Shown: positions 3,061 to 56,584 of the stretch, one piece after another | How positions within the stretch are numbered: position 1 is the stretch's first letter | Layout of the letters: every line of letters begins with the position of its first letter | Source of the DNA: Macrostomum lignano | Taxonomy: Eukaryota | Assembly: GCA_002269645.1 (NCBI GenBank) | Contig: NIVC01001679.1 | Span: 186,001-250,000, forward strand | DNA: 64,000 bases | Reading direction: 5' to 3' | Made by a program: the position numbers and the translations under genes | Notes under the pieces: model-generated | Database searches by the model: none | The model's input: the letters and a program-made list of their open reading frames with translations, nothing else | Told to the model about the DNA's origin: nothing

Positions 3061-3956
3061 TGAGTCAGCTGACTCTTCTAGTTCCCTCTCGAAATGGAAA
3101 TTGCAGTCTGGTGACATCTCCGAGTACAGGGTTCTGCGAGTGCTCAAGAGTGCTAGCAAGATCGACTGTCTGAGCAGTTCCGATGCGGCCGAAGCTGCCT
3201 ACGCTGTCTCATTCAGCGCTGAGTCGGTTGACTGCACCCTGCTGGTGTGCCACCGAGGCAGCAAGGACGCCTGCCGAAAGTGCCGGCACGAGAGAGATGC
3301 TGGCCTGGCGAAGCTGTGGGTGAGTAGCACAACTCAGTGATCAGGATACTGCCGAGTTGTAACAGAGCCAGCTCTCATGCGAAACTTCATCTCTTGTTAA
3401 TTTCAGTTCAAAGAGCCGTTGGGCTGCTGGACGACGTTCCAGCACAGAGTCGACGGCTCCGTCAGCTTCAACCGGAACTGGGGGGACTACGTGAACGGAT
3501 TCGGTCAGGGCGAGAGACTCAACTACTGGATGGGACTGGAGCAGCTCCACCAGCTGACCGCCACTGGAGTGTGGAGAGTCCGCTGGGAGTTTCAGCGACT
3601 TTAGCAGCACCTGGTACTGGGCTGAGAATGCTCCGTTCTCTGTTTGCCCAGTGGCCGATAAGTACAGGTGCTCGATGGGACCTCTGGATGTGAGCAGGTC
3701 GAGTGTCGGTCAGGGAATCGGAGCAGAGTATTTGCCGGATAGCCATCAGTTCAGCACGCCTGATAATGACAATGACGCGTGGAGTTCCGGCAACTGCGCT
3801 GCCGAGAAGTCAGCAGGCCGGTGGTATGGACAGTGCATCGCCATCAACCCGAACGGAATCTACTACCCTGGTGAAATAGGTGGCATAGTACACTACCTGT
3901 ACGACTCGGGAAACGTTTTTATGAAGACTTTCGAGCTGCTCATTTATAAGGAATAA
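3061..3956 (+). pseudogene. PAN-like + fibrinogen-related domain (FReD) gene copy, 5'-truncated and frameshifted; exon remnant 3061-3319, intron 3320-3406, exon 3407-3956
   Basis: Near-identical to the intact gene at 15147-16120 in inverted orientation. Homology stops at 3061, so the ATG and most of the signal peptide are missing. An extra T at ~3590-3592 (GAGTTTCAGC vs GAGTTCAGC) shifts the frame. FReD motifs: FQHRVDGSVSFNRNWGDYVNGFG, YWMGLEQLHQLT, FSTPDNDND. Confidence 0.85.
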
Positions 3957-6053
3957 ATATTCTGCTTCGATTCGAGCAGCTGCTCATATGATCAGCAACA
4001 TCGGCTGATGCTCGTGGATGAACCGACCTGAGAAACTTTTACTAAACAATATCTTTTAAATACTGTTATAGTGCTTTAAACTCATATTTTTGGGACCTTT
4101 TTAGACTCGGGATTTTTGGGAACTGTCTACTGAGATCCAGTGGCAGTGAGCCGCTTTAATTTCTGTTTGTTAAATAACATCACTAAATACAAAGCAAACC
4201 AAGCAGCTACCTATAGCTAATCGCATTCATATGTGTGGATTTCGAGTTGATCATTTTGTTTTCGATTTGATTTGACTGAACTTCTTTGTCAATAGCGTTC
4301 TTTTGCTAAGAATACTCATTTCTGAATTGGTGCTCAGGGGTTATGTTATGTTACTTGTTATGCTATAGCTAGTACGAGTATTAGGCAGAATCAATGTATT
4401 CAGCCAAGAGACGCCCAAAATCAATCACGATATGAAATTTAGGATTTATGAAAACGACTCATCTCCAGAACGATATAGCATTTGGAATTTAATTTCACCA
4501 GTTATGTAAGGTACTAGAGAGAAAAACATATATCTTGATGGTCTCTGCATCACTCTTTGTCAGTCTCTATATCACCAGCCACCCTTTTGTGAACTGTATA
4601 CTCTTTTCCCCCGCAGTGTGACTTGTTGTTATATATAACTTTTAGAAGTTTCACTGCGTGACCGGAAAAGTCAAGAGGATGCAACAAAGAACTGCAGAAG
4701 TGCGCAGGATGCAATGCAGAAGCATCGCAGACAACGTGTACGAGCGTACCGATTTGCAACTTCATTCGTGACTCTTGTTGTTGTCTTGTTGTTGTTGACT
4801 CCTTGTTGTCAGAATGTTTATACAATCCACGGTATTTTGAGGGGCAAATCGAATTACTATACGTTCGTATTTTTTTCTTTTTTTCGCATTCACTAAATAA
4901 TGACATTGTCAGCATTGCGCTAAAAAGCCTGCAACATTTCTAATCTCTATAAATCTGGATTCGGCAATCTCTGGCCGCGAAGCCCCTTCCCGCGGGTCCT
5001 TTGAAACTTCACAAGGCATGGGGGGCTTTTTGGACAATACATGTATTTTAACTTTCTCCATACGCTCGTAATGTTATTAACTCTAAATAGATTATTTGCA
5101 AAGAAATTGATAAAGATGGGGGAATGCCGACTTAGGGAAATTGAAAAAAATACGCCCCCCCCCAAGTAAAACCTATGGGGGGACATGCCAATGCTTTGTC
5201 TCCCCACCCCAACATGTGGACCAGTTGACCCGTTATAGAAGTAAAAAATTTTGCTTCAGGGCGACAAAACATAGCGCCTGTAGCACCAAAATGCCTGCAG
5301 CGCTAGAATGGTGCCTGCGGCGCTAAAATATTGCCTGCGGCGCTAAAATCAGTGCCTGCGACGCTGAGCGCTGACAACACCGACTCTCAAAATAATGTAC
5401 ATGTACATATAGGAATTTAGTCATGTACATGTAGAATTGTTGGTTTTGTCACCGCACCATAAAACCCCACCCACCATGTGTCCTCCTGCATGCATCGAGA
5501 TCCCGTGTCCCTGCATCCAGATCCCCTGTCCAAACAAATTCAGCCTCTACACAGTAGCTCACTCACGCATACGAAGCACTCCCTGTTTTTTCCGCTGCGT
5601 TGAGTGGTACGATGTTTTAGTGGTTGTTCCTCCACTCTTCCTCATTTAAAAAGTTGCTTACTCGTAATAAGGCTTAAAAGTTTTACACTCAATGACGTAA
5701 AGTGCCTTATGCAGTTGCAAACTTCAGCACTTTTTTAGCTAAGTCAGGTATGAATTTTCTTACTCTAAAGCGGCAAAATCTTATATGGCTCGTTAGCGGA
5801 TATTAATTGTTGATTTATAGCTAATGAAAAGCAAACACAAGATGCTACATTTATGCCTTGCCTTACCTTTACTCAGAGAGAGCAAAAGGTAAGCTAAGAA
5901 CTAAGCGGTAAGCCATATAGAGACGACAAAGCAATTGTTTGTACCGCCATCTTTCTATTGGATAGCGAGCCAATTAAAAGCCAGCGCGCGCTGCTTCTTC
6001 TACACGGTTCTACAGACTGTGTTGCTGCTTGCTGCAGCTCTGACTGCTGAATC

Positions 6054-6794
6054 ATGCGGAGCGGCATCAGAGTTCACCTCCAGCTGCTCATGTTGCCACT
6101 CCTCCTGTGGCACAGCGCGTCAGGAAGTTTTTACCATCCGAGGCACGGATTTCTCTGCATCCGGCCCGAGTACCAGACTAATGTGTCAGGCGTCACTTCC
6201 GACGTCCTGTGCGCGGATTTGTGCAACAGTGACCAGCGCTGTCAGGCGTTCAGCCTGGCTGACGGCCCTTGCCAGCTGTTCTTGTTCGACAAGTGCAGCA
6301 AGTCGGTGAAGGACTGCGGCTGCTCGAGGAGAGGCCGGGTGTTCGTGAAGCAGCAGCCGGGACTGGACCCGGGCGCGCTGTGCCCGTCAGGCTACACCAT
6401 GGACCTGTGCGGCGTGAAGTACAAGGCCCTGCCGACAGCTGCACCGTGGAATACTCAGAGGCAGGCTTGCGAGTCGACCAGTGGCCTGGCGATCATGGCC
6501 GACGTGACCAGCAGCGCTGAGATGTCGCATATCGGGCAGCTTTACGTTAACAACTTCACTGGTGGCCAGTCGATGTGGCTTCACGGTCTTCAGGCTCCCG
6601 GGAGTGTTGAGCCCGACGGAGGCTGGAGCTGGGTCACCTGCAACATCACAGTGTATGCCAGCTTCTGGGCCAGTGGCGAGCCTAACAATGCCGGCGGAAT
6701 CGAGGACGCCATTTTTGCGGGCACGCAGTTGGGTGACGCCACGAAGGCGAACTTGAGAGGTGGCTTGTGCGAGTGCCTGTCACCATTTGATTGA
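6054..6794 (+). CDS. secreted PAN/apple + C-type lectin domain protein (246 aa, single exon)
   Basis: Hydrophobic signal peptide (LQLLMLPLLLWHSASG); PAN motif CADLCNSDQRCQAFSLADGPCQL; CTLD motifs CPSGYT..C..KYK, W...RQAC, MWLHG, WSW, FWASGEPNNAGGIED, LCE. Confidence 0.88.
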   Translation: MRSGIRVHLQLLMLPLLLWHSASGSFYHPRHGFLCIRPEYQTNVSGVTSDVLCADLCNSDQRCQAFSLADGPCQLFLFDKCSKSVKDCGCSRRGRVFVKQQPGLDPGALCPSGYTMDLCGVKYKALPTAAPWNTQRQACESTSGLAIMADVTSSAEMSHIGQLYVNNFTGGQSMWLHGLQAPGSVEPDGGWSWVTCNITVYASFWASGEPNNAGGIEDAIFAGTQLGDATKANLRGGLCECLSPFD

Positions 6795-7018
6795 GCCAGT
6801 GAATTTAATCATCTTCTGAGAAAAAGTTAACGGAAACATATTTTATAAAACTTGTCCCTTTTTGCTTGTATCGTTTAGTCAACCGATGACTTTACTCGTG
6901 ACAAAAAACTTTGCAAATAAAATGATAAAGCATATTTAAAACTTGGCCTTTTCCCCATCGGCAACATAGCAGAAGCAATTGAATTAATTGTTCTACTAAA
7001 ATTTCTTGTCGCGCCCGG

Positions 7019-9404
7019 TGTTACACTTTATACTATCCGGGGTTTTTTTGTCTGGCCCGGATATCCGAACGCACTTACGATATCCGCCCGGATACTGCCA
7101 GGCAAAAAACCTGCTTTGTTTTCTCCTTCCCAGATATCTTGAGCTGCTTTGCATTGTCAGGGCACTTTGAGATGTCTCTCCCGGACATCCTACGGCACTG
7201 ACTCTGCTATCCGGCCCGGAGATCACAAGAAGGGGAAGTTGTCTTAGGACATCCGACTGTAGGTTGAAAGAGAGGGGTCAGTCTGCGGAGACAGAGGTTT
7301 GCTTTAGGACATCCGGCTACTGATATCCGAGGTTTGGAATAGCAAAATTTCGAAATCAATTTTCACAAAGTAGAAAAAACTTTTTGCTACTTTTTCAATT
7401 GGCAAACATCTGCGTCATGCTTCTTTAACCGAGTATATTTTCAATCACTATTTTGCATTTCACACTCTCCAAACAGAAGTAAAATTAAAGCTATTGATAC
7501 AATACATTGTCAACCGAAAAACTGTTACTTGATTCACCAATCTACATGTAATTCGATCAATCAAAAACAGGCGATCCGCTGAATGAAGCGTGATGAACCA
7601 CAGCCTTCTTCAGATGCTTTCCGTTTACACATTTTGACAACCCAGCCAGCTGATAAGTATTTTTGCCGAGGCATTTGATGATGCGGTAGACCCGCTCACT
7701 CCACGTCTTCTGCAGCTTTCCGCCCTTCCTGTCGTCTCGGCGTGTGTTGCGAAGTCTCACCCGATCTCGAACCTTGAACTCCTCTGCTCGAGTTCGTAAA
7801 GCTGCGTGGCGCTTTTTCATTCGCTGCTGGCTCAGTTTGATTCTCCGCGGGATTAATTTTTGGGATGCAGCTCGCTGTTTGTTCTTCTCGATCATCCAAC
7901 CCCGATTTACAGGTGCAAACTTAGGCTTCGAGGCTGTAGGCAGCAGCGCCGCTGCCTGGTTGCCTAGCAAAGGTTCGAAACCAAACGCGGCCTGAAATGG
8001 TGAAATTCCAGTGACTGAATGTCGTCGGCTATTGTAGGCCAGTTGAATTTCATTGAGGCTGGTGTCCCAGTCAGTTGGATTCTCTGATGAGCAACACTTT
8101 CTTAATAGACTGATGCAGGTCTGGTTCAAGCGTTCGGTCTGTCCGTTAGTCTCTGGGTGATACGCGCTTGTTACTCGTCTTTCAGTTCCACCAGATTCTA
8201 GAAGGACGTCAATAATTGAGTTGCAGAACTCCCGTCCCTGATCGCTGAGGATAATGCGCGGCCAACCGAACAGTGCAGAGGTCCTTCAGTTCCTTCGCGA
8301 TGGATGCAGCTTGGATGTTAGACAGAGGCCGGAATACAGCAAACTTTGTAAATTTACAGCACACTGTCAGAATGTACCTGGATCCTGAATCGGTGGTCGT
8401 TGGCATCGTGATGCAGTCGACACAGAGAAACCCAAAAAGCCTGCTCGCATTGTCCGGTATTTCAATCGGATGAATTTCGCTTTGCTTGGTTGAAAATTTC
8501 TTGTTGACCACTTTGCACTTGGCACAAGCTTCCATAGCGGATTTGGCCATTGGCGATACAGGGAAGTCAGCGAAGTACCTCGACGTAAAGAGGCTCAATG
8601 TGCTCTTATTACCTACGTGACTTCCCTGAATGTGCAAAGCTTGCAATTTGCTCTTGACTTCTGCGATGTCGTAAAGAACTTTGCGCTTCTCTTCAGACCT
8701 CCTTCTCTGACTGTCCGCTTTGTTCTTGACTTGATACTCGTAGTACAAGGAGCCTTCATGAATCGTGAAGTTTTTGCTCTTTTCTCTTATTTTTCTTTTT
8801 AGATTATCTCTTTCTTTCGTACTGGAATTTTCCAGCAGCTCAACATACTCGTCGTTCAAAACATAAAAAACACTTGGTTCAGCTATACTTTAGCCATCGA
8901 GAGATAAATTTTTCTAAGGGTAGAACTTCGACAAAAAATAAACTCTATATATCTTAAAAGTTACGTGTAATATACTCTCTCTAATTTGCGCAACACTTTC
9001 CTTTGTGGGCTATTAGCTCGTACACTGATCTTCATTGCACGTACGCTTGTAGTGCTGGCAATGTGACGCCAGTCCATTATCGATTTATTCTTAGACTGCA
9101 CCTCATCTGCCCCTCCCCTGTCTAAGGTGCAGTCAGGGCCCTTCCCTGGCCTCTGAGTCAGCCCCATTCTCTCGAAATGATGTCCTGCCCCATTCACATG
9201 CGCTTTATCAGGTAAATAACTTGACCACCTTGCCACCCAAATCTTTATTCACCCCGGACAATTTAAGACCCAGGATATTTCAAAGCCCGATTTTGTTGTG
9301 CCTTGGATTATCCAGGGTAACGTAGGTTATCGCAAAGCGACAATAATTTTGCTTTGCGATGTCCCCCGGACAAATTAAGACCCCGGAGAACAGAAAGCCT
9401 AACA
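7019..9404 (-). mobile_element. Ginger1-like (Gypsy-integrase-related) DNA transposon, decayed
   Basis: Termini TGTTA (7019-7023) and TAACA (9400-9404), flanked by CCGG on both sides (7015-7018, 9405-9408). Imperfect ~40-bp TIRs (CTTT.T..T.TCCGGGGT.TT..TTGTC.GG) and TATCCGG/GACATCCG subterminal repeats. Encodes an integrase with no RT or gag. Confidence 0.8.
7557..8880 (-). pseudogene. Gypsy-type DDE integrase/transposase of the Ginger element, frameshifted at ~8272
   Basis: KRKIREKSKNFTIHEGSLYY; zinc finger LHIQGSHVG...CAKC; catalytic core LCVDCITMP, (frameshift) LFGWPRIILSDQGREF, AYHPETNGQTERLNQT; C-terminal FKVRDRVRLRNTRRDDRKGGKLQKTW...TYQL. No clear ATG. Confidence 0.85.
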
Positions 9405-11152
9405 CCGGGTAACTTTTCAATATTGGAGCTGGGTGGGTCAATGGTAAGGAGCGCCATGCATAGCCAGATGACATTATGAGTTATGATGACATTAGCGCTT
9501 GTAAATTACTGTACATGTAAATTACCGCGCCGACCCGTGCAAGAGGTGCTGTTGCTGACTCGGCGTTTCGTCGACTGCCTGCGGCGCGTGGCGTCCCGGA
9601 TTCGGTCGGTCGAGTGGCCTTCGTTCGCGACTTGGCCCAGAGACGTGTCCTGTCAAGTTGGTTTCTAAGGAACCTGACAACGCATTTTGTTGCTGCTGTT
9701 GTTTGTTTGTTTTTTTCGCAACGATGCTGATTAAGTATGTTGACTGCACGGTCTTTGCAGCTTGAGGAACGCGTTCCACAGACGTCGGCCGGCCTCCCGT
9801 CTCAGCAGAGGTCACTCATCTTTGGGACGCCGAGCGCGCGCTGGACATCCATCCAGGGTGGAGCTGGTCTGGTCCGTCTGGTCCTCTAGCCCGCAGTGCT
9901 GACAAGTCGCTGCGTCGGTCACTCCGATCCGGTGTGCAAAGGTTGCTAGCTTGATGTTAATCATGCGACGGGTTTGATCCGAGAGCCTTCCACCCGGATG
10001 TCTGGTGTGTCGGGCATTGGATTATGAAGTGTTCGAGGTCCTCCTAGGCCTACTGCGTTGCTGCCTTAATCGTTGCGAGTTCCGCCTGTGTCGAGGAGCA
10101 ACCCGGCCCCGCGGGGCGGCTTACCAGCAGCTATCTCAGAGCCATCTGCCCATACACTGAACCCGGCTCCACCACGCGGGGCCTCGCCGACCGATCCGTC
10201 GGTGTACATGTAGATAGTGATGTCCGTATGCTTTTCGCTGAGCCTCTCCAGCGCAGCCTTCCTGTTTGTTCTCTTCCTGCCTCGCCAGTGCTAGGTAGGC
10301 CGCCCGGGGGGGGGGGGTTCCACAGTCAGGCCCGCCCCGATCACGCACAGCCGCTTCAGGAGGCTGGTCCTGCTCCTAGCTTTCGTGACACAGTGTCGGA
10401 TGTGCTCGGCGAACGTCAGCCTTCTGTCTATGTAGACACCGAGGTATTTAATCGTCTTAGTTGGACGGAACCACTGGCCATTGATAGATATCTCCCCATC
10501 TCCCGCCACGCTACATCTTTATTGTTCAGGCTGAACACACCCACCTCGCACTTTTGCGGGTTTAGACTGAGGAGCCACTTCTTGCTCCACTCAGCGACGG
10601 CAGTCACACCCTTCTGGAGCTTCCTGCTAGCTTTGGTGACAGTTTCGGCTTGGCAACACAGGACCAGGTCGTCTGCAAACAACCTGATTTTGACCAGCTC
10701 CTTAACCTGGTCGACTACGTCGTTAATGTAGATCAGAAAAACAAGACAGGTGATAGCACGCCTCTTTTGGGCAGCCCTTATTTCATAACAACGGTACGTC
10801 CACGGTCATTACCCATGTCGGACCCAGGCCAGCCTGTTGAAGAGCAAAGCCTGGACCCACCGTATCAGCCTTGGGTCGAGCCCCATGCGCCGCGTGTTTT
10901 CCAGCAGCCCGTCCCGCCAGACCGCGTCAATGCCCTGACACAGGGGAGAGGATTTGGTCTGTCGCATTCTGGTGGCCAGTCCTGAAGCCGGAGGAGGAGC
11001 CGGAGCGAGGAGCCCGTTGCTTTCCAACGCGTGGTACAATCAATTACTGATCATTCTCTCCCGATGGTAGCAGTCAAGCAGATAGGGCGGTACGACGAGG
11101 TCAGCTCTGGGTCCGGTGAACCTGATGAATGCGGTCACACCAGCTAGCAGCA

Positions 11153-11516
11153 TCTTTTTTTATTAGAGGCAGGGGGGTTGTTTGCACCCTGGCGCACTTT
11201 AAGCGACATAGGCACACAACCGGCGAGAGGCATTACTGCCCATTCCGCCGACTCCCCTGAGCAGGCATACAAGCGCGCGGATACGTACGCAGGCACACAC
11301 TCACACAGGAGTGTACAGCGGCCCTAACTTTCTATCATCGTTAGGCATGTACACTTCACTGCGCCTTGGGGGGTTGGCTCTCAAGGCCGTTAATTGCACG
11401 AGCAGAGCCAAGCCGAGATTCCAATTCAGCCCCAAATTAATGTGACTGCACTTGGAATCGAGCCTGGGTCGCTGGCACACCAGAGCAGCTGCGCTAGACC
11501 GCTGGGCTACGGCCCC
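11153..11516 (-). mobile_element. tRNA-derived SINE, full length, inserted in the LINE
   Basis: Minus-strand head GGGGCCGTAGCCCAGCGGTCTAGCGC...GGCTCGATTCC (Pol III A and B boxes); tail AATAAAAAAA; 12-bp TSD CAGCTAGCAGCA at 11141-11152 and 11517-11528. Further copy at 45159-45767. Confidence 0.88.
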
Positions 11517-12029
11517 CAGCTAGCAGCAGCTGCTTGAGCAGTTGCGGGTGCACTTCGTCGGGTCCCGGGACTTTGCTACCGTCGTCCAGCGCTCTCCGCA
11601 CCTCGGCCTCCGTGATCTCCGGGTCCTGACTTCTCGCAGCCTGACGCAAACCTTTATTCAGCTTCCACTTCATCTGCCGGTTCGTGCGTTGCACCTTTAC
11701 ATTGCTGATCTCGGCGTACATGTACGCCTGGGCGAAGGCCGTGGCCTTGTCAACAGGGGTCACCAGTCTTTTTTGCCCCTAAGCTATGACCTCGGCAAGC
11801 ACCCTCGGTGCCTTTTCTTTGCATCCGTTGGCCAGCTTCCACATATCCGCAGCGCTACCTACTCTCGCAACCCGGCTCCACAACTTATCACTCAGCTCGC
11901 TTCTGAACCTGTCCAACGGGTCCACACCATCGCTGGCCGACCCTCCAACTACCTCCTCACGTCCCTCCGCCGCCGCCTCCGGTTCAGCTTCCCAGGCCAG
12001 GCTACAGTAGTTATGTACCACCCGATGCG

Positions 12030-12535
12030 ATCAAGACTGAAAAGTACCATAAAAAGCCATGTTAACCAAGCAAGAAGCTTGCCTCCTTCCGCCCTCCCTT
12101 TTTTGATTGTCTCGCTCTCGCCTCCATTAGCTCTTCGATCGCTCTCTAGGAAGTACTTTTGATTGAAACAGTTAGAGTCTCAACCCAGATACCAAAGCTA
12201 ATAACCTTGACCTACTGAAGTTGAATTGACAAACAACCATTTCTCCATAGTAGACTGAACCTTCGGTTCATCCAAACAACCAGAACCATTATAACAGTTG
12301 AATCAATCGAGCTTCTTATTTGGAATACTTCATTTAGACATTGTATTTTGTAAGATACCATCTTGAGATTGTGAACATCAAATACAACGGTCTGTAAGTA
12401 TCCATCGTGTATTTGCATCATCAGGAAAAGTCAGTCGAATCCGCCGCCTAAGTTATTTGGCTCTCACATTGATACTTAAAGTAGAAATAGAGCCATAGGA
12501 GTGAGAGACCACCCACAGCATATTTGAAATATTTC
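12030..12535. other. unclassified AT-richer insertion splitting the LINE ORF
   Basis: LINE coding sequence stops after KAADW (~12535) and resumes near 12020; the intervening sequence has lower GC and no recognisable motif. Boundaries are approximate. Confidence 0.45.
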
Positions 12536-12946
12536 ACCAGTCCGCCGCCTTCCAATGCCAAGTCAGGCGCTCCTCCTCCTTTAAAACCTCTTGTCACCCT
12601 CCGCAGATCAGGATGGGCGCGTGATCCGAGCCGAGCTGCCGCTCTACAGTCAACACAGGCCTCCACTGCCCCGGAAGACGACCAATGCTGTACCACGTGA
12701 CGTCTGGAGCACTCGGCTGCTCCATGCCTCTACCACGCCTGGTCGGGGACTCATCATTCAGCAGGGTTACGTCCCTTTCTTCAATCCACTCCTCGAGCAG
12801 GTGGGAGCAGCTCACTGCGGGCGTCAGCACGTGCATCCGTATTCCAGCTGCTGCTTTGCGCATTAGCGTCGTCCATCCAGAGGCCCCATTCACCCTCCGG
12901 CCACTTCCGCATCTGCGCTATCGCCACGTCCTCTCCCGGGCTCTTC

Positions 12947-12949
12947 AGC

Positions 12950-13021
<72 letters not shown>

Positions 13022-13285
13022 GTGACCTCGGCCCGGAACCGTCAGGCGATCCACTGCGGGTGAGCCGCCCTGAGGAACCTCACCACCATGTTCTCCTTCC
13101 TGAGATCTTCCAACTCCTTCAAACCGATACGCTTACGAAAACCGCGCGCACCTCCACCAGTGATATTTATCTTCCATATCATCACATTCTTCGCATACAC
13201 TCTCTCCTTCCAGTCCCACCTTCTGTCTCCAATACTTGGCGTATTTACAGTGGCCCCTTCTGAGCTGCGATACGATGCTGCTATC
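12947..13285 (-). mobile_element. 3' end of a second I-group-like LINE with (CAA)n tail
   Basis: SQLRRGHC...CEECDDMEDKYHWWRC (C-terminal zinc finger) followed on the minus strand by ~25 CAA units, seen as (GTT)n at 12947-13021. Confidence 0.7.
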
Positions 13286-13286
13286 G

Positions 13287-14350
13287 CGGTTGCAGCCTGT
13301 GCTGGATCCGTACCTGCGTCCTGAGCAGAACGGCTTCCAGCCCCATCGCGGCACAGTGACGCAGATCCTGGCTCTTCGGCGAGTCATCAAGGAAGCACTG
13401 ATACGCCAGTCGATCCTGATTGTTATCTTCATAGATTTCAAGAAGGCATGCTGTTTCGAAGGATGGTGTTAAGGACTTTGGCCAGAGTGCATTCTAGGGC
13501 TATGCCGCGGAAGTAGTTGAGGCCGCTAGATTTGCTCTGCTTGGGAATGGTGGCCACGATCTTAGAAGTTCTCCATCGCTCTGGGGCACTAGCAGCAGTT
13601 GAGTCCCCGTCCAGGCAGCAAAAGCGGTTGAGGATTCCAATGATGACAGGCAGCAGCTCGGGCATCTTCAGGACACGCGGTAGGATGTCATCGATTCCCG
13701 CTGCTGCATCAGCCCGCATGGTTCTTAGGGCCTTGGAGACTTCATCCATGGAAATCGGAGCGCAATTGAAGTCGGATGGGCAGGCAGGTGGAAAGCCATC
13801 GAGCGTTGATGATAGCATTCGGCGTGGCTCGCCGTCCTGTGAGGCGGTTGATGGTGCGCCAGGCTGCAGCATGGCGGCAGTTGTCAGTGGCAGCCTTGAT
13901 CTGCGTGCTGCAGACTGTCCAAGGACCACACCCGCCTCGACTGGATTCTCTGCCCAATGTCGCAGAGAGCCATTCGTACTCGTAACATCACCCTGAAATG
14001 CATCCCATCCGACCACACTCTCCTGTGCTGCAGACTGGACCTTCGGACCTTCAGGAAGCCGGCCAGTCCCCTGCCCTAATGGGATGCACTTAAAAATTCT
14101 GAAATCAGATCGAACTTCCGACTCGGGGCTCCGCCTTGACAGCTGCTACGACAGCCTTTCCGTAGCAGTCGCTTCTGCGGCAGTGCAGTGCTCCCCAGGA
14201 GGCAACCGCGGCACACTGGAACTCTCACCCGGATGTCATCAGAGCCCGGCCAGACATGCAGACTGGTCTCTGTATGCGTTTCATTTAACACTTCCCTGAT
14301 GTAAATGCTTGGATCCGGTCTTTGCAGGAGTAAAATCCATCGGAGTGATT
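13287..14350. mobile_element. RTE-like LINE fragment with an internal inversion
   Basis: Minus strand 14016-13453: PISMDEVSKAL..AAGIDDI..WRTSKIVATIPK..FRGIALECTLAKVLNTILRN. The direct continuation RLQPVLDPYLRPEQNGF...IFIDFKKA is on the plus strand at 13287-13447. Confidence 0.72.
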
Positions 14351-15146
14351 GCATGAGGGCGACTGAGTTATCACAAGCTGCATGGGTGTGCCTACCTAAT
14401 GTGAACTAACGGGAAGGAGTGTTAGCACTGTGTTGAACTTTCATTTAATTAACAAATTTAATTTACTTCAATCTGATATTCCAAATCAGGACTGGAATCT
14501 AAAATCTTCCAAAAACAAAACTCATGGAGACGTCTACTCAACTGTTCTCTCTTATATCTCATCTCTCCTTCAAGTCGTAGACATGTAGGTATACTACTTT
14601 GTATTATCAAGGGTTACGCTTTAGTCCACTGTACTCTATAGATACATTTTACGTAGCTAGAGGCTTATATCCCTGTGAATTGAGAAACTCAGCTTTCTGA
14701 TCCAGATCAATAATCCCTTTGTTCAATCTAATATAAAGTCAAAATGTTCGTTCACATCCCGGAATCCCCGGCAGCCGAGTCAAGTAAGGCTAATGACAAG
14801 TTGAAAATGAGCCGTTCAGTCCCGAAAAAATCAAATCGAAGCTCACATATTTGAATGCGATTGAGTAAGTTAATTGATTTGCTTTTGTATTTAATGATCT
14901 TTAATAAACAGAAACTTTAGCGGCTCACCACCACTGGCACATCAGAAGCGCGCCAACGCATTCCCGAAAGTCCTGCTTCTGGCCAAATTGTCGCAAAAAC
15001 TAAAAAAGAATATAAATTACTGTAACAGTATTACAAGATTTTTAAAAAAATTGTTTATTAAAAGTTTCTTAGGTCGGCTCATTCACAAGCATCAGGCGAT
15101 GTCGCTGATCAGTTAAGCAGCTGCTCGAATCGAAGCTGCAGAATAT

Positions 15147-16120
15147 TTATTCCTTATAAATGAGCAGCTCGAATGTTTTCATATAAGAGCTGATTGTCAG
15201 CACGGTTCCCGAGTCGTACAGGTAGTAGAATATGCCATCTTGTTTGTTGTCTGAGTACAACTTGTAGATTCCGTTCGGGTTGATGGCCGTGCAATATCCA
15301 TACCAGCAGCCGGCCGACTTCTCAGCAGCGCAGCTGCCATGAGTGTGTGCGTCATTGTCATATTCGGGTGTGCTGAACTGCCAGCCGTTCGGCAGGACGT
15401 TCGGATGAGTCCGCTGTCCGACAATCGACCTGCTCGCGTCCAGAGGTCCCATCGAGCACCTGTACTTATCGGCCACTGGGCCAACAGAGAACGGAGCATT
15501 CTCAGCCCAGTACCAGGTGCCGTTCCAGTCGCTGAACTCCCAACGGACTCTCCACACTCCAGTGGCGGTGAGCTGGTGGAGCTGCTCCAGTCCCATCCAG
15601 TAGTTGAGTCTCTGGCCCTGACCGAATCCGTTCACGTAGTCCCCCCAGTTCCGGTTGAAGCTGACGGAGCCGTCGACTCTGTGCTGGAACGTCGTCCAGC
15701 AGCCCAACGGCTCCTTGAACTGAAATTAACAAGAGATGAAGTTTCGCATGAGAGCTCTGTTACAACTCGGCAGTATCCTGATCACTGAGCTGTGCTACTC
15801 ACCCACAGCTTCGCCAGGCCAGGATCTCCCTCGTGCCGGCACTTTCGGCAGGCGTCCTTGCTGCCTCGGTGGCACACCAGCAGGGTGCAGTCACCCGACT
15901 CAGCGCTGAATGAGACAGCGTGAGCAGCTTCGGCCGCATCGGAACTGCTCAGACAGTCGATCTTGCTATCACTCTTGAGCACTCGCAGAACCCTGTACTC
16001 GGAGATGTCACCAGACTGCAGCTTCCATTTCGAGAGGGAATTAGAAGAGTCAGCTGGCTCAGCAACCACTGCTAAGGCGATTGCAAACACCCAACAGGTA
16101 AGCCGCAGTTCGGGACTCAT
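15147..16120 (-). CDS. secreted PAN-like + fibrinogen-related domain protein (FREP-like), 296 aa; exons 16120-15803 and 15719-15147
   Basis: ATG plus signal peptide MSPELRLTCWVFAIALAVVA; 83-bp phase-0 intron GTGAGT...TTTCAG joins AKLW to FKEPLGCW; complete FReD through YMKTFELLIYKE*. Confidence 0.9.
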
Positions 16121-16693
16121 TTGTTAGCTCTATTGGGTGTCATAAAGAGAATACCGATATGGGAATCTTATGAGCTTTGATTGCACCTCGCAAGTGAGTT
16201 TTCCCCAGCTAAACTGACTTGTATTTATACACACTAATGAATGCGATGCCTGCTTTAACTGAAAGCTTTTCACTGCAAATCTTCTGAATGCCGAATGTGT
16301 CGCATTGAAGCCCCCGACAAAGGCTTCCAAACTGGGACCGGTTGCTTCATTTGCCTTTTAGAGGCTGTAGAGATGTTTGGCTATTATGAAAAACTGCTCA
16401 TTGATGAGGCGTTTTGAAGCTGCGATGCTTTGCATTCATTTCCAGCTCCTAGACAACAGACAGCAGTTCCAGCTCATTAGCTGCTTAGATAGAAGCTCCA
16501 TTGTTGATCTGCATTGTGCAGTTCCCCTATTGTCTTCTTTTAGGCTTTCACAGTAACAGAATTCAGCTCTTTTCGAAAGGATCTCGACACGTTTCCTGTT
16601 AGAGAGGCAGGGGATCTGGGAGGGTGGCGTGTTAAATAGAAAATTTAAAACAACTTGAATTAACTCGAAAGAAACATGATTATTTAGTATGCA

Positions 16694-16878
16694 CCGTCAG
16701 CTTCAACCGGAACTGGGGGGACTACGTGAACGGATTCGGTCAGGGCCAGAGACTCAACTACTGGATGGGACTGGAGCAGCTCCACCAGCTCACCGCCACT
16801 GGAGTGTGGAGAGTCCGCTGGGAGTTCAGCGACTTTAACTGTAATTGGCACTGGCCTGAGAATGCTCCGTTCTTTGTT
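16694..16878 (+). pseudogene. third FReD gene fragment (internal part of exon 2)
   Basis: VSFNRNWGDYVNGFGQGQRLNYWMGLEQLHQLTATGVWRVRWEFSDFNCNWHWPENAPF; homology ends abruptly on both sides. Confidence 0.85.
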
Positions 16879-18179: not shown

Positions 18180-22117
<3,938 letters not shown>

Positions 22118-22397: not shown

Positions 22398-28734
<6,337 letters not shown>

Positions 28735-29358
28735 ATCTGTAAGCATGAAATCAATGCCAACTGGTTTGGATACAGGGCTGCTAGCTTCAGAACTTCAGAA
28801 CCGCGCGACAACCGGTTCTGGAAGGAAAATAGTACAGATCAACAAAAATGCTTTTCCGCGCACGTCTGCCTATCAACGTTCACTAGCAATTCACGTGCTT
28901 CGCTGTACTTCTACTCGAGTACTCTTCACTTCACTCAGCCAGCATCTTCTGTCCCCCTGTTCCCTCTCTGACCCGTTTCTATTGCAGGCGAGGGGGGGGT
29001 GGTTGGCTGGCCAATGGAAAAGCGACCCACGGCTCTTAACGTACTACGGAATTCCTGACTCACACAGTACAAGCAGCTCTTTCCCTCCTCTTACTAGTGG
29101 ACCCTCACCCTCCTGGGTTGAAGGGGTTGTCTGCTTGGCATTTACATTGCATTCAGTATAGAAGCTCTTGCTTGATGACTATTTTAGGAAAGTAAAGGAG
29201 AGAGACAGATTCGACAGCGTAGAGGTTTGTGAGGTGGAAATACGTTTCTAAGAATTTCCCTAAGGCAATCACGTGTGGTTTAACTGCAGAATCCGGAGTG
29301 GAATTTCGTCAGTTCAGTCTATCAATCATTCAATCTGTCTGTTAGAAACTAAAAAAGC

Positions 29359-32619: not shown

Positions 32620-42276
<9,657 letters not shown>

Positions 42277-45913: not shown

Positions 45914-48253
<2,340 letters not shown>

Positions 48254-49485: not shown

Positions 49486-52400
49486 TTAAGCCTCATCAGC
49501 AGCTTTCGCTGCAGCTTCTGTAGCCTGCTTGGCAAGCTCGGCGTCCTTGCGCCTGGAGCTGGCAGACTTGTTGAGCTCCCCGCCAAGCTTAGATATGTCC
49601 CACAGGTACAGAACGGCGCAGAATATCAGAGCTAGGCAGAGCCAGGCTAGAAAGAACACTTCGAGAATGAGATAACCTTTGGAGTCAACGATAAGACCGG
49701 ATACCTGGTTGAAACGATATTTTAGGGTGTAATTTCAGTTATTTGTTTTCAAGTCGTTTAGAAAATCCAATAAGACAGCAGCCCCAATATACAATTGTCG
49801 GGTAAGGGGGGGGGGGTAGCAGCCCCAATTGTACAACTGTCGGGTAATGGAGGTAGCAGCCCCAAAAAACACTGTCGGGTAAGGGGGCGGGGGGTTAGCA
49901 GCCCCAATAAAACACTGTCGGGTAAGGGGGCGGGGGGTTAGCAGCCCCAATAAAACACTGTCGGGTAAGGGGGCGGGGGGTTAGCAGCCCCAATAAAACA
50001 CTGTCGGGTAAGGGGGCGGGGGGTTAGCAGCCCCAATAAAACACTGTCGGGTAAGGGGGCGGGGGGTTAGCAGCCCCAATAAAACACTGAGGGGGTGAGG
50101 GGTTAGCAGACCCAATAAAACACTGAGGGGGTGAGGGGTTAGCAGATACAATAAAACACTGAGGGGGTGAGGGGTTAGCAGACCCAATAAAAACTGGGGG
50201 GGGGGGTGAGGGGTTAGCAGACCCAATAAAACACTGATGGGGTGAGGGGTTAGCAGATACAATAAAACACTGAGGGGGTGAGGGGTTAGCAGACCCAATA
50301 AAAACTGGGGGGTGAGGGGTTAGCAGACCCAATAAAACACTGAGGGGGTGAGGGGTTAGCAGACCCAATAAAAACTGGGGGGTGAGGGGTTAGCAGATCC
50401 AATAAAACACTGAGGGGTGAGGGGTTAGCAGATACAATAAAACACTGAGGGGGTGAGGGGTTAGCAGACCCAATAAAAACTGGGGGGTGAGGGGTTAGCA
50501 GACCCAATAAAACACTGAGGGGGTGAGGGGTTAGCAGATCCAATAAAACACTGAGGGGGTGAGGGGTTAGCAGATCCAATAAAACACTGAGGGGGTGAGG
50601 GGTTAGCAGATCCAATAAAAACTGGGGGGTGAGGGGTTAGCAGACCCAATAAAACACTGAGGGGTGAGGGGTTAGCAGATCCAATAAAACACTGAGGGGG
50701 TGAGGGGTTAGCAGACCCAATAAAAACTGGGGGGTGAGGGGTTAGCAGACCCAATAAAACACTGAGGGGGTGAGGGGTTAGCAGATACAATAAAACACTG
50801 AGGGGGTGAGGGGTTAGCAGACCCAATAAAACACTGGAGTTTAATTGAAAACAAAACTAGACTAACCTGGTTAATAACAGCCAATCCAAGATTCTGAATA
50901 CTCTGCATAATTCCGTATGCTGTGCCAAGCATATGATTGGGCAGACAATAGGACACCAACGGCCACAATGAGGCTGCTAAGATAGAATAGCTAACGCCAA
51001 GCCAAATCATGATGCCGTAGGGGCTCAGATTGAATGTGAAAGCCAAACAAGCGTGACAGCCCATAGTCATGAGGCTGCCCAGCATCACCCACATGATGTT
51101 GCGACCAGTTCTATCGATGAGGAAGCCACAGACGGGACTGGAAATTGCGCTGACAATATACGGCAAACTGTTCACTGCGTCGGCTTCATTCGGGTTGAAA
51201 TTGAATTTGCGCTCGAAAAATACCTGGCCAAGGCTGATGAAGGGGAACACGCTGACGTAATAAGCTACACAGATCCCGCACAGAAGCCACACGGCTGCTG
51301 GGAACCGAATGATGTCCGATAGCTGGATTTTCTCACCTGAGATTTGCACGGGCGGAGGGTTATAGGCGATTCTTAAGGTGCTTTATGGGCGATTCTTAAG
51401 GTGGTTTATGGGCGATTCTTGAGGCGGTTTATGGGCGATTCTTGAGGCGGTTTATGGGCGATTCTTAAGGTGGTTTATATGCGATTATTAAGGTGGTTTA
51501 TGGGGATTCTAAAGGCGGTTTATGGGCGATTCTTAAGGTGGCTTATGGGCGATTCTTAAGGCGGTTTATGGGCGATTCTTACTCTCAGGGTTGTTTATGG
51601 TTGATTCTTAAGGTGGTTTATGGGCGATTTTAAAGGTGGTTCATAGGCGATGGTCTGTAATAAGACCATGTAATAATAAGATGGTCTGTAAGCAAGCTAC
51701 AATCTCAGTGATGTATTTTTCCCCGTTAGTAAAGTCAGTTTTCAAGATTTTCTAATAAACAAAGTAATTAAGACATTCTCAGAAAAGCGCTAAAACACAA
51801 TTTCTTAAACGAGAAGGTGAAAAATAATTTATCTATTGATGAAAAGAGATGATGCAACTCACTCACCTGTGCTTCCAGCATCCGCTCCAAGCAGCCTCTT
51901 GGCCCTCCTATCAATATAGGCCAGTATAAAAGCGCAGCCCAGCGACAAGATGCAGCTGAACGCAGCCAGGAACAAAGCCGCGCCCAGCTGTTGCCAGGGC
52001 TGGGAGAAGCGGCCATCAAGAGAGTGATAAATTGGCTGCATGACGTTCATATTCACTGTGCTGCCGATGCGAGACATGCTGAGCTGGATGCCGAACACCA
52101 TGTTGAGCTCGTGACCGCGGAACCACGATGTAGCATAGGTGTTCTGGGCCACGGCCAGGCTCTCGCCTCCGATGCCGAATAGGAATCTGGCCGCGTCCAT
52201 CAGCCACACCTGGGCAGGTGGGGGGGGGGGGGTTTGGGATATTTAATTACCGGGGCGATTCTTTAGAGATATTCTATTACCGGGGCGATTATTTAGGGAT
52301 ATTCTATTACCGGGGCGATTATTTAGGGATATTCTATTATAGGGGCGATTATTTAGGGATATTCTATTACAGGGCGATTCTTTAGGGAAATTCTATTACA

Positions 52401-53976
52401 GGGCGATTCTTTAGGGAAATTCTATTACAGGGCGATTCTTTAGGGAAATTCTATTACAGGGCGATTCTTTAGGGAAATTCTATTACAGGGCGATTCTTTA
52501 GGGAAATTCTATTACAGGGCGATTCTTTAGGGAAATTCTATTACAGGGCGATTCTTCAGGGAAATTCTATTACAGGGCGATTCTTTAGGGAAATTCTATT
52601 ACAGGGCGATTCTTTAGGGAAATTCTATTACAGGGCGATTCTTTAGGGAAATTCTATTACAGGGCGATTCTTTAGGGAAATTCTATTACAGGGCGATTCT
52701 TTAGGGAAATTCTATTACAGGGCGATTCTTTAGGGAAATTCTATTACAGGGCGATTCTTTAGGGAAATTCTATTACAGGGCGATTCTTTAGGGAAATTCT
52801 ATTACAGGGCGATTCTTTAGGGAAATTCTATTACAGGGCGATTCTTTAGGGAAATTCTATTACAGGGCGATTCTTTAGGGAAATTCTATTACAGGGCGAT
52901 TCTTTAGGGATATTCTATTACAGGGCGATTCTTTAGGGATATTCTATTACAGGGCGATTAGAGTAATAGAGTATCCCTATTACTACGACGACGACCTAAT
53001 TTACGACGACCTAGCGAGACGGCGCAGCAAGGCCTGGGCTGCCTTCCAATCTGTGCGGGCGGTGCTGCTCTCCGAGGCCCTGTCCGACGGCGCCAGGTCC
53101 CAGCTGTTCCAGGCGGTTGTTGAGACCGCCCTGCTGTACAATGCTGAGACCTGGACGCTGACCGGGGCGCTTGAGGCGCAGCTCGACGCGGCACATGCGG
53201 CCCTAGTCCGCGCCACTTTCGGCGCCCGCCGCGGCCCTGGTAGCGAGACAACCGAGTCCCTGTACAAGCGCACAGGCCTGACGCGGCCTTCTGCCCTGCT
53301 GAGACAGCGGCGCCTGCGGCTGGCCGGACATGTCATCCGGGCCGAAGCTTACTGCCCAGAGCCGCTGCAGGACGTCCTGTTGTGGACACCGCAGGGACCG
53401 CGCAGGCGTGGCCAGGGACGATCAGCCCGCTACGTCGACCGCCTTTTTGAAGATGCGCGAGCACCCAGCCAGGCGGCCGGTGTGAAGCACATTAGAGACC
53501 TAGCTCTGAAACGCGCGATTGACGCTCCCCCTTTTGGCCACTTCTGTGGCTGGCGTGGGGCGTAACTATTATTATTATTATTATTTTTGTTATTACAGGG
53601 GCGATTATTTAGGGATAATTTATTACAGGGGCGACTTCTAAAAAAACCAGAATTCTCACCTTATTAATAAAAGCGCCAAAGGCGAACAGCAACTGACCAA
53701 CCAGACAAAACGATGAGAAAATAATTGCTCCAAGGCGAATACCAAACAGCCTGTCAATCAGGTAGCCACCAATCATTGACAGCACAACATTCGGCCAAGA
53801 ATACCAGGCGTAGAAGGACGAGTACTGGGCGGTGGTCAGGCTTAAGTCTTCTGTCATGACGTCTTGCAGAGCGCTTGGATTATCGTAGCAGAAATACGAG
53901 CCAAATGACAGGAAGCACATGAAGGACAAGGCGAGATAGCGGTGCAGCGCCGACCGAGGGTTGCAGGCAGCGCAGC
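49486..53976 (-). CDS. MFSD1: MFSD1 lysosomal MFS transporter; exons 53976-53660, 52209-51867, 51336-50867, 49704-49486; first (ATG) exon not identified
   Basis: MCFLSFGSYFCYDNPSALQ, YAWYSWPNVVL..GGYLIDRLFGIR, FGIGGESLAVAQNTYATSWFRGHELNMVFGIQLS..RIGSTVNMN, GTAYGIMQSIQNLGLAV, DSKGYLILEVFF match MFSD1 as recalled. Phases 0/1/0 are consistent. Confidence 0.9.
49830..50835. repeat. 36-43-bp tandem repeat (GGGGTTAGCAGACCCAATAAAACACTG core) in an MFSD1 intron
   Basis: Directly visible; the unit changes from ~43 bp (left) to ~36 bp (right). Confidence 0.93.
51360..51650. repeat. 23-bp tandem repeat (TTTATGGGCGATTCTTAAGGTGG)n
   Basis: Directly visible in an MFSD1 intron. Confidence 0.9.
52240..52958. 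repeat. 29-bp tandem repeat (GGGCGATTCTTTAGGGAAATTCTATTACA)n
   Basis: Directly visible; degenerate units continue after the LINE insertion at ~53590-53640. Confidence 0.94.
52959..53590 (+). mobile_element. 5'-truncated RTE-like LINE 3' end with (TAT)n tail
   Basis: DLARRRSKAWAAFQSV...SQLFQAVVETALLYNAETWTL...RRLRLAGHVIR...RRRGQGR, then TAACTATTATTATTATT. Flanked by TATTACAGGG(G)CGATTA on both sides; this could be a TSD or simply array units. Confidence 0.82.
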
Positions 53977-56584
53977 CTGAATCAACAATTTCAATGGAAT
54001 CAGTTTTGATGGCACAATTTGAAAACAATAAATAATATGAAGTGGTGGGTGCAAAAAAACCTGATCATTACAAGTTGCTAACTATAATGGTATTGATTAT
54101 TGGTTGACTTAATTAATTGAGACAATTCTAATATTTATGATTAGTTTTATAGCTCCTTTTATCTATCCATTGTTATCTTGAAACAATCCATAGTTACCAC
54201 TAAATCATACCATTTTTCTTAATACCTTATCCCTTAGTCAACCTAAATTTGGGATAAAAAAGTAAATTTTTGTAACACCTTCCTTACTATCTTTAGCCAT
54301 GTGTAGCAACTATTGAAGTGATTCAAAACATTTGGTAATCTTTACCACAAAATCCTATGTTTAGCAACCATTGAAGTGATTCAAAACATTTGGTATTGGT
54401 ATCCTATTTTGCTAATAAAAATATTTTTCTAAATTTCAAATTTTATTTGCATCAACTTGTACAAAAAGCTAGAATCTAGAATAAGTAACTGTATCAATAT
54501 TCTAAGTTTTCTAATTTTATAGCTGTTAAAAGAACAAAATACAAAAATCATATAAATAAAAAAGTAACTACTATTAGCTTGGTTATTTGGTTATACAATA
54601 ATAAATATAATCTAAAATTTGGTTGCTTTATAATTATAGTAAAGAAGATAGTATAGCAAATGAAAATGTCTAAAAGCCACAGCAATAAGCCTAGGCATCT
54701 TAAGGCTTATTTACATTGCTATCAAACAAGCTGCCAAAACATAAACAATTTAAGCATAGTTCCAGTTTACTGCATTAAACTATTTCGCCCTCTATTCAAA
54801 GGTAGGGGGGGGGGTTGGAATATAATGAAGTAAACTAGAACCCTGCCACAATTTAAGCGCTTACAAAGGAATCAAATATGATATACAAATTGGGTGATCA
54901 CATAAAATTTGGTCTTATTTGATAGCATTATAAGTAAATATTTAATTTCTAAGTATTATTTTTAATTATTATTATTAGATAATCATTACTAAATAATTAC
55001 TGATTTAATTATTATTTATTAAAATATATAACTAATAAATATACAAATTCAAAAGCTTAAATCTTAGATTTTTACTTTTTTAGCATTCTTTTGTAATTTA
55101 TATCATGCACTCAAAGACTCAATTAGGCTCATGCACTTAATTTAATAATTAATCTAGCAAAAGCTTTTAGGCCTATAAAAATTAGAAAATGAGATTTTTA
55201 TATATTTAGTTCAAGAAGTTGTGAAAAAATAAAGCTAAAATCTTGACTTGATTAAATTAAAGAAGTATTTTTAGTTACTTAGGAAACTTTTTAGTCTATA
55301 AGTATTGTGGCTCTAGATTTTGTTCAACAGATAAAAATATTGGCTATGCCACTGAAAACGTTGATTAAAGGCAGATATAATTTTGAAGATTTTTATTAAC
55401 ACACTGCTTGGAAATAATGGAGGAAGAATTAGGCCTAGTAAGGGATAATTGAGTAGTAAATGCAGCATTGTATTGTCAATAAGTCGAAAATGTAGATATT
55501 TATTTACCTTGGTACTCAACTTCATTGTTATGGTCCCCAGTTGGTGCATTTAGGGCAGGAGACTGATTGCTTAAAAGAGGACTTGTTTCCTCTGCACTAT
55601 CCATGACAGGCTAAACTTTTGCAAAGTTACAAGCTACTAGGGTAGGGTCTAATCTAATTAAATACTTAGCTCTGCTGGTTACTAGTATGGGCCTAAAAAC
55701 TCCGTCTAGTCTAGGTCGACAACTGCCAAGAAAATGATGTTTGTGTTTATTACTAAAAACGATAAAGTTAAAAATTTGCAGTACTAACAAGAGCCATTTG
55801 ATCTACTTTATTTTAACTGAAACTTGCGTGAATAAAACTTAGTTTGATAAACAATATAATACTAAAGTTGAAGTCTAACAAACGCCAAAGAAAAATCATT
55901 TTAAGTTTTGATAAACTGATTAACGGATTAGTTTAATATTAAATAGGCTGTCTTAGAATAAAAAGCACTACGTTTTTGAGATCGAGATTCGCTGAATTTT
56001 TGCGCATATATTGATAATGCAGGTGCTACAGAGCAGTGCTTTATTCTGAAAACAATGCTTAAAAACCATATGCAGATTGGCTTTCTCTTCAAAACATTAA
56101 ACGGTGTTTGTTCTGCGCAGTTACACTAGCTGTAATCAGCATGTTTTACTTTTTTGTGGTGGCAAATAATTGCTTCGACTTTGTGCTGAGGCCCGGCCTG
56201 AAACGCTAAATGTGCTACTCCGCCGTTGTACATGACCGATGCCTCTGATCATTCAGAGCTGGAAATTATACACTGATGTACATGTATATTTCTAGCGCCT
56301 GTACATTTTATTATTGCATGAATATCATATGTATGATGTATAGCTACATCCATCCTGGCCGCGGCCCCCACTAATTTTTGCGTGCCCTCCCAATTCTTCC
56401 CCTGTGATTCTTGCGCCCCTGTGATGACTCACCCCACTTCCCGCGCACCAGCCCAACTCAATTCTATTTTATAAATAATTCATGAGTGTAACGGTTTCTG
56501 ATCCCTTATCTTCCCAAGCTTCTTCCTGCCTGTTACATAATCCCCCATTATAAATTATTTTTCTCGCTGCGCACCTCAATTTCT

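Follow-up and report, generated by a model that had tools for sequence, protein, structure and literature searches.

Two genes for secreted lectin-type proteins are found within positions 3061–16878 of a 64,000-nucleotide stretch of the genome of the flatworm Macrostomum lignano (assembly GCA_002269645.1, contig NIVC01001679.1, positions 186,001 to 250,000 of the forward strand; this whole stretch is referred to as the window), and they raise the question of whether neighbouring lectins of different classes were built on one shared N-terminal module. One of the genes encodes a fibrinogen-related domain (FReD) and the other, the CTL gene, a C-type lectin-like domain (CTLD). As had been noted in a preliminary description of this DNA, which proposed a lectin cluster sharing one PAN/apple module, both products were found to consist of a hydrophobic signal-like peptide, a Cys-bearing module and a lectin-type domain. 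The reading favoured here, which we regard as moderately probable, is that these are two unrelated, lineage-specific genes for secreted lectin-like proteins, each with a PAN-like head, which are neighbours by chance, approximately 9 kb apart in repeat-rich DNA. The best matches of both window proteins were M. lignano proteins at 53–69% identity, and in protein searches all homologues of both genes were from M. lignano, except for a bacterial Lectin_C protein, P0011, which is a homologue of the CTL gene.

The intact FReD gene (16120..15147, minus strand; Table 1) was shown to consist of two exons with a spliced product of 296 aa. Exon 1 encodes the signal-like peptide (residues 1–21) and the N-terminal Cys module as far as ...AKLW (residue 106), and the phase-0 intron after 'LW' was found at the identical position in the M. 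lignano paralogue P0001. Pfam Fibrinogen_C matched the protein with an E value of 5.5e-34 over profile positions 41–207 only. Assignment to the FReDs was confirmed on the level of both family and fold, by PDB FReD sequences at about 1e-22 and by Foldseek at about 1e-10 with a model of a paralogue; the FReD alignments obtained with the full-length paralogue model were 182–248 columns long. The window protein has kept the [D/E]-x-D-N-D calcium motif and the Cys pair of the P subdomain. The set of A, B and P subdomains is incomplete, since the canonical A subdomain (Pfam positions 1–40) is absent in the window gene and in every relative, and its place (residues about 30–111) is filled by the Cys module of approximately 85 aa, referred to below as the N-module.

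Pairwise comparison of the window gene with P0001 showed ratios of nonsynonymous to synonymous substitution rates (dN/dS) of 0.31 for the module and 0.35 for the FReD domain. Both parts of the gene are under purifying selection, and the conserved intron together with these ratios shows that the N-module is a constrained, integral part of the FReD family. In the same comparison (15147–16120 against 10001–11182 of locus L001), the synonymous divergence was approximately 1.34 in exon 1 and 0.53 in exon 2, which is 84% identical in DNA to P0001; this contrast between the exons may point to gene conversion, or to FReD paralogues with a mosaic history.

The N-module was found in M. lignano only. An exhaustive profile search among 1.84 billion cluster representatives gave 22 matches, and all genuine ones were M. 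lignano FReDs in which the FReD core (CW.T.QHR) follows the module immediately; at 50% identity the family comprises 15 or more clusters. In this search the module was seen nowhere apart from a FReD, and a CTLD was found in none of the matched M. lignano proteins. The family alignment follows the pattern W..GD..EY...C-x19-22-C.L..C..G...CRKCR...L..LW...CW, in which one invariant Cys and an A-V-x-F strand are followed by G-x-C-x-L, another Cys, CRKCR, L..LW and CW(T/K/R)TFQHR. The long proteins with an N-module are evidently fused gene models. In the gene model P0021, a signal peptide and a canonical four-Cys PAN protein (PAN_1 E 0.0011) are joined to an N-module FReD, and this model probably represents two neighbouring genes, hence a second locus with a PAN gene beside a FReD gene. 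P0007 shows two tandem N-modules before the start of the FReD. Four further candidates were dropped as non-Macrostomum or spurious: P0016, a repeat protein with a PA-IIL match that was aligned through its 'GAVTFSLTSGSCTLL' repeat; P0018, a metagenomic repeat protein whose unit is 'C..YA..NGAQAFRFD.....C.Y' and which matched nothing in Pfam or the PDB; P0029, with a CRKCRNAENG repeat; and P0024.

What kind of fold the N-module has was addressed by structure prediction. The AlphaFold2 model of the isolated module, made from a 15-sequence alignment, showed a mean predicted local distance difference test score (pLDDT) of 77.5, and in the model of the full-length paralogue the module was the best-predicted part (pLDDT 76–94 over those residues). 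The predicted order of elements is strand, strand, helix, strand, strand, Cys-rich loop and strand, of a beta-beta-alpha-beta-beta type. When the isolated module was compared with the PDB by Foldseek, the highest probabilities were those of PAN/apple proteins. The Sarcocystis lectin SML-2 (2YIL) was matched with a probability of 0.72–0.80 and a TMq of 0.46 and the PAN domain of EtMIC5 (1HKY) with a probability of 0.30, and the PAN domain of a Colletotrichum copper oxidase (6RYX) was superimposed with a root-mean-square deviation of 2.4 Å over 49 columns. The entries 1HKY and 6RYV/W/X were also found with the sequence profile of the CTL-gene PAN domain. The PAN core disulfides are present in part: the outer Cys pair is conserved and aligned, and the inner Cys positions are occupied by other residues in all 15 N-modules, as the preliminary description had stated for the window gene. 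Judged from these models, the N-module is plausibly a PAN-like fold without the inner disulfide.

An A subdomain had first been suspected from the DC...C spacing, and this reading was demoted when the isolated module was found to match PAN and not FReD structures among the top 50 Foldseek entries. As an alternative it states that the N-module is not derived from PAN, and is either a remodelled A subdomain (DC-helix-hairpin-C, extended at the N-terminus and with CRKC inserted) or an invention specific to Macrostomum; the two window genes would then be unrelated neighbours whose heads had converged on a small Cys-helix-hairpin pattern. The N-module sits exactly where Fibrinogen_C positions 1–40 are missing, with a Cys-helix-strand-strand outline like that of the A subdomain, and this common position and outline make a much-altered A subdomain a possible origin. 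In addition, phmmer aligned '...AKLWF' with 'VWC', the last strand of the A subdomain in ANGPTL2, and the occurrence of the module exclusively with FReDs fits the same view. Several results on the PAN side also weigh against a PAN origin. No Pfam PAN model matched any of the 15 members at E ≤ 10, and no PDB sequence was matched at E ≤ 10 with either profile. Foldseek gave no match at E ≤ 0.001 for the isolated module (best E 0.44, TMq at most 0.48), the input alignments for AlphaFold2 were shallow (12–15 paralogues), and the hhalign probability for the profiles of the two head families was 22–26%. Set against the alternative is the Foldseek ranking itself, with several independent PAN/apple structures and no FReD chain in the top 50. 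With the profile comparisons given below also taken into account, we consider a non-PAN origin rather unlikely, and a degenerate PAN domain is preferred.

For the CTL gene, the PAN assignment made in the preliminary description held up. The core of its N-terminal module has the spacing C-x3-C-x5-C-x9-C, read directly as CADLCNSDQRCQAFSLADGPC. Pfam matches were obtained with PAN_4 (E 0.001; 19.5 bits against a cut-off of 27), PAN_3 (13.4 against 21.1 bits) and PAN_1 (12.8 against 21.4 bits), all of them below the gathering score, and only in two of the four members of the CTL family (the window protein and P0008). This family consists of the window protein and three M. lignano homologues that carry the UniProt name 'C-type lectin domain-containing'. 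Compared to known structures, the family profile of the PAN part matched the EtMIC5 PAN domain of Eimeria (1HKY) with an E value of 1.2e-4 and the apple domain of Toxoplasma TgMIC4 with an E value of 0.017. A word-indexed search with the same profile gave nothing at E ≤ 0.1, and no wider family of this PAN type was found.

The C-terminal part of the CTL product was more divergent than the proposed C-type lectin domain had implied: Pfam Lectin_C did not match the window protein even with the cut-off relaxed to E ≤ 10, nor P0008 and P0009 at E ≤ 0.01, but the profile of the family matched the bivalve lectin codakine (E 1.5e-5), L-selectin (E 0.0025) and, more weakly, langerin and DC-SIGN, together with about 40 further CTLD chains. 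The family-profile matches to PAN and CTLD structures confirm an architecture of signal peptide, PAN and CTLD-like domain, and to judge from its sequence the CTL gene is a fusion of a divergent PAN and a divergent C-type lectin domain. Among the features that define a calcium-dependent sugar-binding CTLD (EPN or QPD, WND and two canonical disulfides), direct reading showed EPN to be present (WASGEPNN) and both WND and the 'EDC' Cys to be absent. Since no Cys follows the ED position, the second canonical disulfide is missing or moved, and the absence of WND and of the EDC Cys makes calcium-dependent sugar binding by this protein uncertain. A CTLD without WND and with one canonical disulfide fewer also counts against the lectin activity that the favoured reading supposes for this gene.

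How alike, then, are the two heads? The two module types were shown to be 13–21% identical, and BLASTP of the two window modules gave an E value of 0.096 over 19 residues, which is not significant. The CTL gene does contain CADLCNSDQRCQAFSLADGPCQL and the minus-strand FReD gene CLSSSDAAEAAHAVSFSAESGDCTL, the peptides on which the preliminary description had based an alignment without gaps, but these strings are 23 and 25 residues long and the outer Cys of the window pair can be aligned only with a 2-residue gap. On the level of families, hhalign of the two profiles gave a score of 23.2 (P 7e-4 to 1e-3), which exceeds the scores of all 300 column shuffles (mean 10.8, standard deviation 2.3, maximum 19.9). 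It placed two strands, AF/VxF and G-x-C-x-L, in register together with the outer Cys pair, which was aligned in every profile alignment. The CTL-PAN profile scored the 15 FReD modules with a mean of 9.0 bits and a best score of 19.8 bits, and 11 of them lay above the 99th percentile (5.7 bits) of 3000 composition-matched shuffles (mean 0.16 bits). The best alignment was that of P0007 (17–20 bits, conditional E 7e-6), which is ungapped over 54 residues and shows Ala at both inner PAN Cys positions; an ungapped alignment of this length exists only for this other M. lignano subfamily, P0007/P0013. In the reciprocal comparison, the FReD-module profile gave 7.9–13.4 bits with the four PAN domains of the CTL family and 7.1 bits with an unrelated PAN from Macrostomum, located at the N-terminus of P0021, so that all five PAN sequences exceeded the 99th percentile of the shuffles (5.2 bits).

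These comparisons bear on two questions at once. Reciprocal scores above those of composition-matched shuffles, and a 54-residue ungapped alignment that places the outer Cys and the AF/VxF and G-x-C-x-L strands in register, argue against convergence of unrelated folds. Because the CTL PANs and the unrelated PAN were scored similarly, the FReD module resembles PAN domains generally and not the PAN of its neighbour particularly. On the favoured reading, both heads belong to one superfamily as remote relatives, and neither is a copy of a module that the two genes came to share recently. PAN membership of the FReD N-module is likely; it falls short of proof because no Pfam or PDB sequence was matched and no Foldseek E value was better than 0.44, so that this part of the preliminary description is supported by the predicted fold, the Foldseek ranking and the profile scores but not by a domain model. 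Its central claim of one shared module is not borne out, given the low identity, the similar likeness to another PAN and the distribution of the two module types, each of which is exclusive: the FReD type, with its 15 or more clusters, occurs with FReDs and the CTL type with its own four-member CTL family, and neither was found with another class of lectin. Taken together, the earlier reading was partly right, since both heads are PAN-like, but a shared module, an ungapped alignment of the window pair and an immune cluster are unsupported.

The immune cluster refers to the suggestion of a modular lectin system like that of the gastropod FREP, CREP and GREP proteins, in which one PAN module would be combined with several lectin domains in clustered genes that act with a neighbouring peroxidasin-like enzyme. 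PAN-like heads on both genes, the expansion of the FReD branch in M. lignano and the P0021 model, which suggests another PAN gene beside a FReD gene, would fit such a system, as would the PAN/apple proteins with fibrinogen domains (FBG) known in molluscs (PMC7588048). Against it stand the low identity and the exclusiveness of the two modules and the match of the FReD profile to an unrelated PAN about as well as to the CTL PAN. No PAN-CTL gene was found within 10 kb of P0001, the single paralogue locus read, and the gene structures show no signature of shuffling: the CTL gene has no intron, and in the FReD gene the module and the signal peptide have an exon in common. Approximately 8 kb of degenerate retroelement sequence parts the two window genes, and adjacency is the sole tie between the peroxidasin-like gene and the lectin genes. 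We consider this system very unlikely, and unrelated neighbours with distantly related heads are the preferred explanation of the locus.

The locus itself lies in eukaryotic DNA that is rich in repeats. By tblastn and direct reading, four lectin-related elements were found within 3061–16878, namely the intact FReD gene, the PAN-CTL gene, a FReD copy and a FReD fragment (Table 1). The proposed lectin cluster is thus reduced to one intact gene of each type, the remaining two elements being a probable pseudogene copy and a fragment amid transposon debris.

Table 1. Features in and next to the lectin-gene interval of the window (positions are those of the window).
Feature	Position	Strand	Remarks
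Truncated FReD copy	3061..3956	+	No ATG or signal peptide; 1-bp insertion near 3590, then in-frame TAG
CTL gene, intronless, 246 aa	6054..6794	+	Open reading frame (ORF); predicted secreted PAN + CTLD-like protein
PAN/apple module of CTL gene	6156..6347	+	Residues about 35–98, 8 Cys
Divergent C-type lectin-like domain	6381..6791	+	Residues 110–246; EPN present
Degenerate retroelement sequence	7557..14016	-	Broken ORFs between CTL and FReD genes
FReD exon 2	15147..15719	-	Codes FKEPLGCWTTFQHR... to stop; fibrinogen-related domain without A subdomain
FReD intron, 83 nt, GT-AG	15720..15802	-	Parts N-module from FReD B and P subdomains
FReD exon 1	15803..16120	-	ATG at 16120, GT donor at 15802; signal-like peptide + Cys module
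PAN-like N-module of FReD	15803..16033	-	Residues about 30–106, a few codons further into exon 2
Inverted FReD exon-2 fragment, 188 bp	16691..16878	+	94% identical to 15483..15670
Peroxidasin-like gene	18180..22117	+	Ig domains + animal haem peroxidase, at least 3 coding blocks

The duplicated DNA of the plus-strand FReD copy reaches position 4251 and showed 84% identity over 1247 bp to 14830..16061. Lacking a start codon and a signal peptide, and with an insertion that leads to an in-frame stop, this 5′-truncated and frameshifted copy is a probable pseudogene. Its sole frame-breaking lesion (3590–3605, plus strand) is one extra T within a short T run, beyond which the frame is open to the same stop codon with in-frame deletions of 9 and 15 nt; the extra T may reflect recent pseudogenisation or an assembly error. 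The FReD exon-2 fragment is located approximately 570 bp upstream of the start codon of the intact FReD gene and forms, with the gene body, an inverted repeat around the promoter region. In the degenerate retroelement sequence, one broken ORF at 10428..10682 contains an RVT_1 fragment (E 3.4e-6).

The peroxidasin-like gene, which starts approximately 2 kb past the FReD gene, was matched by An_peroxidase (E 9e-123) and by Ig_3 and I-set. Its coding blocks were found at 18180–18404, 18596–20815 and 21572–22117 (the C-terminal ORF), with an (AGAT)n run in the first intron and an array of 20-mers (21231–21560) in the next. Directly downstream of the last ORF follows a (TCTA)n microsatellite (22398–28738) that is 6.3 kb long and almost pure, with approximately 1588 copies and 98% matches, and dozens of minisatellite arrays with units of 16–30 bp are present elsewhere in the window. 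Exon-like ORFs of an SLC6-type transporter and two MFS-type transporters were found at 32635–42276 (plus strand), 45914–48253 (minus strand) and 50708–54028 (minus strand); they are broken up by long minisatellite arrays and unrelated to the lectin genes, and their identity is taken from ORF translations alone.

On the favoured reading, the module of about 85 residues that exon 1 encodes along with the signal peptide, in place of the A subdomain, has most likely arisen as a degenerate PAN/apple fold that kept the outer disulfide, lost the inner one and gained a Cys loop containing CRKC. The family also has a Cys of its own in the first FReD strand (CWTTFQHR, against GGWTV of other FReDs), and the extra Cys probably staple the module onto the FReD. 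In the second gene, a PAN module is fused to a divergent CTLD within a single exon. Both proteins probably act outside the cell by binding glycans or surfaces, and a first binding site would be provided by the P subdomain of the FReD or by the CTLD. PAN/apple domains form a binding or self-association surface in SML-2, TgMIC4 and factor XI, and by analogy the PAN-like head probably provides a second surface of this kind. A further step would be that Macrostomum built its own PAN-based, two-site (PAN plus lectin) set of secreted proteins for mucus or innate defence, with a single-disulfide PAN grafted in for the FReD A subdomain and a fuller PAN fused to a CTLD, as a counterpart of the Ig-based FREP and CREP proteins; this appears quite unlikely at present.

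Compared to ficolins, tachylectin-5 and angiopoietin-like FReDs, the Macrostomum FReD showed similar B and P subdomains (about 30% identity, Foldseek E about 1e-10), the same [D/E]-x-D-N-D calcium-site motif and the same P-subdomain Cys pair. It differs from them in that the A subdomain with its DC...VYC disulfide is missing, a Cys replaces the glycine of GGW, and the PAN-like module stands where those proteins have a collagen or coiled-coil region for oligomerisation. The CTL gene shares with codakine, its best profile match, and other EPN-type C-type lectins the EPN motif and an N-terminal 'long-form' Cys hairpin, and differs from codakine-type lectins by the absence of a Pfam Lectin_C match, of WND and of the EDC cysteine and by the PAN domain at the N-terminus. 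The FReD module in structure searches, and the CTL-gene PAN in sequence searches, found their best matches among the apicomplexan proteins SML-2, EtMIC5 and Toxoplasma MIC4, and PAN/apple domains of such lectins can themselves bind galactose-type glycans. Unlike the Macrostomum proteins, these apicomplexan proteins have tandem PAN arrays with full disulfides and no fusion to a FReD or CTLD, and their resemblance to the FReD module does not reach significance.

In gastropod FREP, CREP and GREP proteins, related N-terminal modules likewise precede different lectin domains (fibrinogen-related and C-type), but their immunoglobulin superfamily (IgSF) modules are clearly homologous across the classes and the proteins are tied to anti-parasite immunity, whereas the Macrostomum modules are PAN-like, only remotely similar and each exclusive to one lectin class. 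A closer precedent is found in molluscs, where PMC7588048 cites PAN/apple together with FBG in Biomphalaria glabrata FREP1/Bg179, some Lottia gigantea FReDs and Crassostrea gigas genes. These are also secreted proteins with a PAN/apple domain and a C-terminal FReD from lophotrochozoan, lineage-expanded FReD repertoires, but their PAN domain is recognised by InterPro and Pfam and stands upstream of an IgSF domain or linker and a complete FBG. In the Macrostomum family, Pfam does not detect the module, which has no inner disulfide, carries the CRKC loop and directly replaces the A subdomain, and neither an IgSF domain nor a coiled coil is present.

A description of the Macrostomum family was not found in the literature, where searches led only to the precedent in molluscs and to work on adhesion proteins. 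New is the variant of a Pfam-cryptic PAN-like module with a single core disulfide that replaces the A subdomain of a FReD, in a family detected only in M. lignano. No long-standing question is opened by it; combinations of PAN and FBG are already recorded in molluscs. If the PAN reading is true, the family would show clearly how a small adhesion module can take the place of an integral subdomain of the FReD fold, in proteins that standard domain models annotate only as 'Fibrinogen C-terminal'. It would also add a flatworm example to the recurring pairing, among invertebrates, of FReD and C-type lectin domains with varied N-terminal modules. M. lignano is a tractable model with RNA interference and transgenesis, and these genes would provide a defined, expanded family in this species for work on mucus, adhesion or defence.

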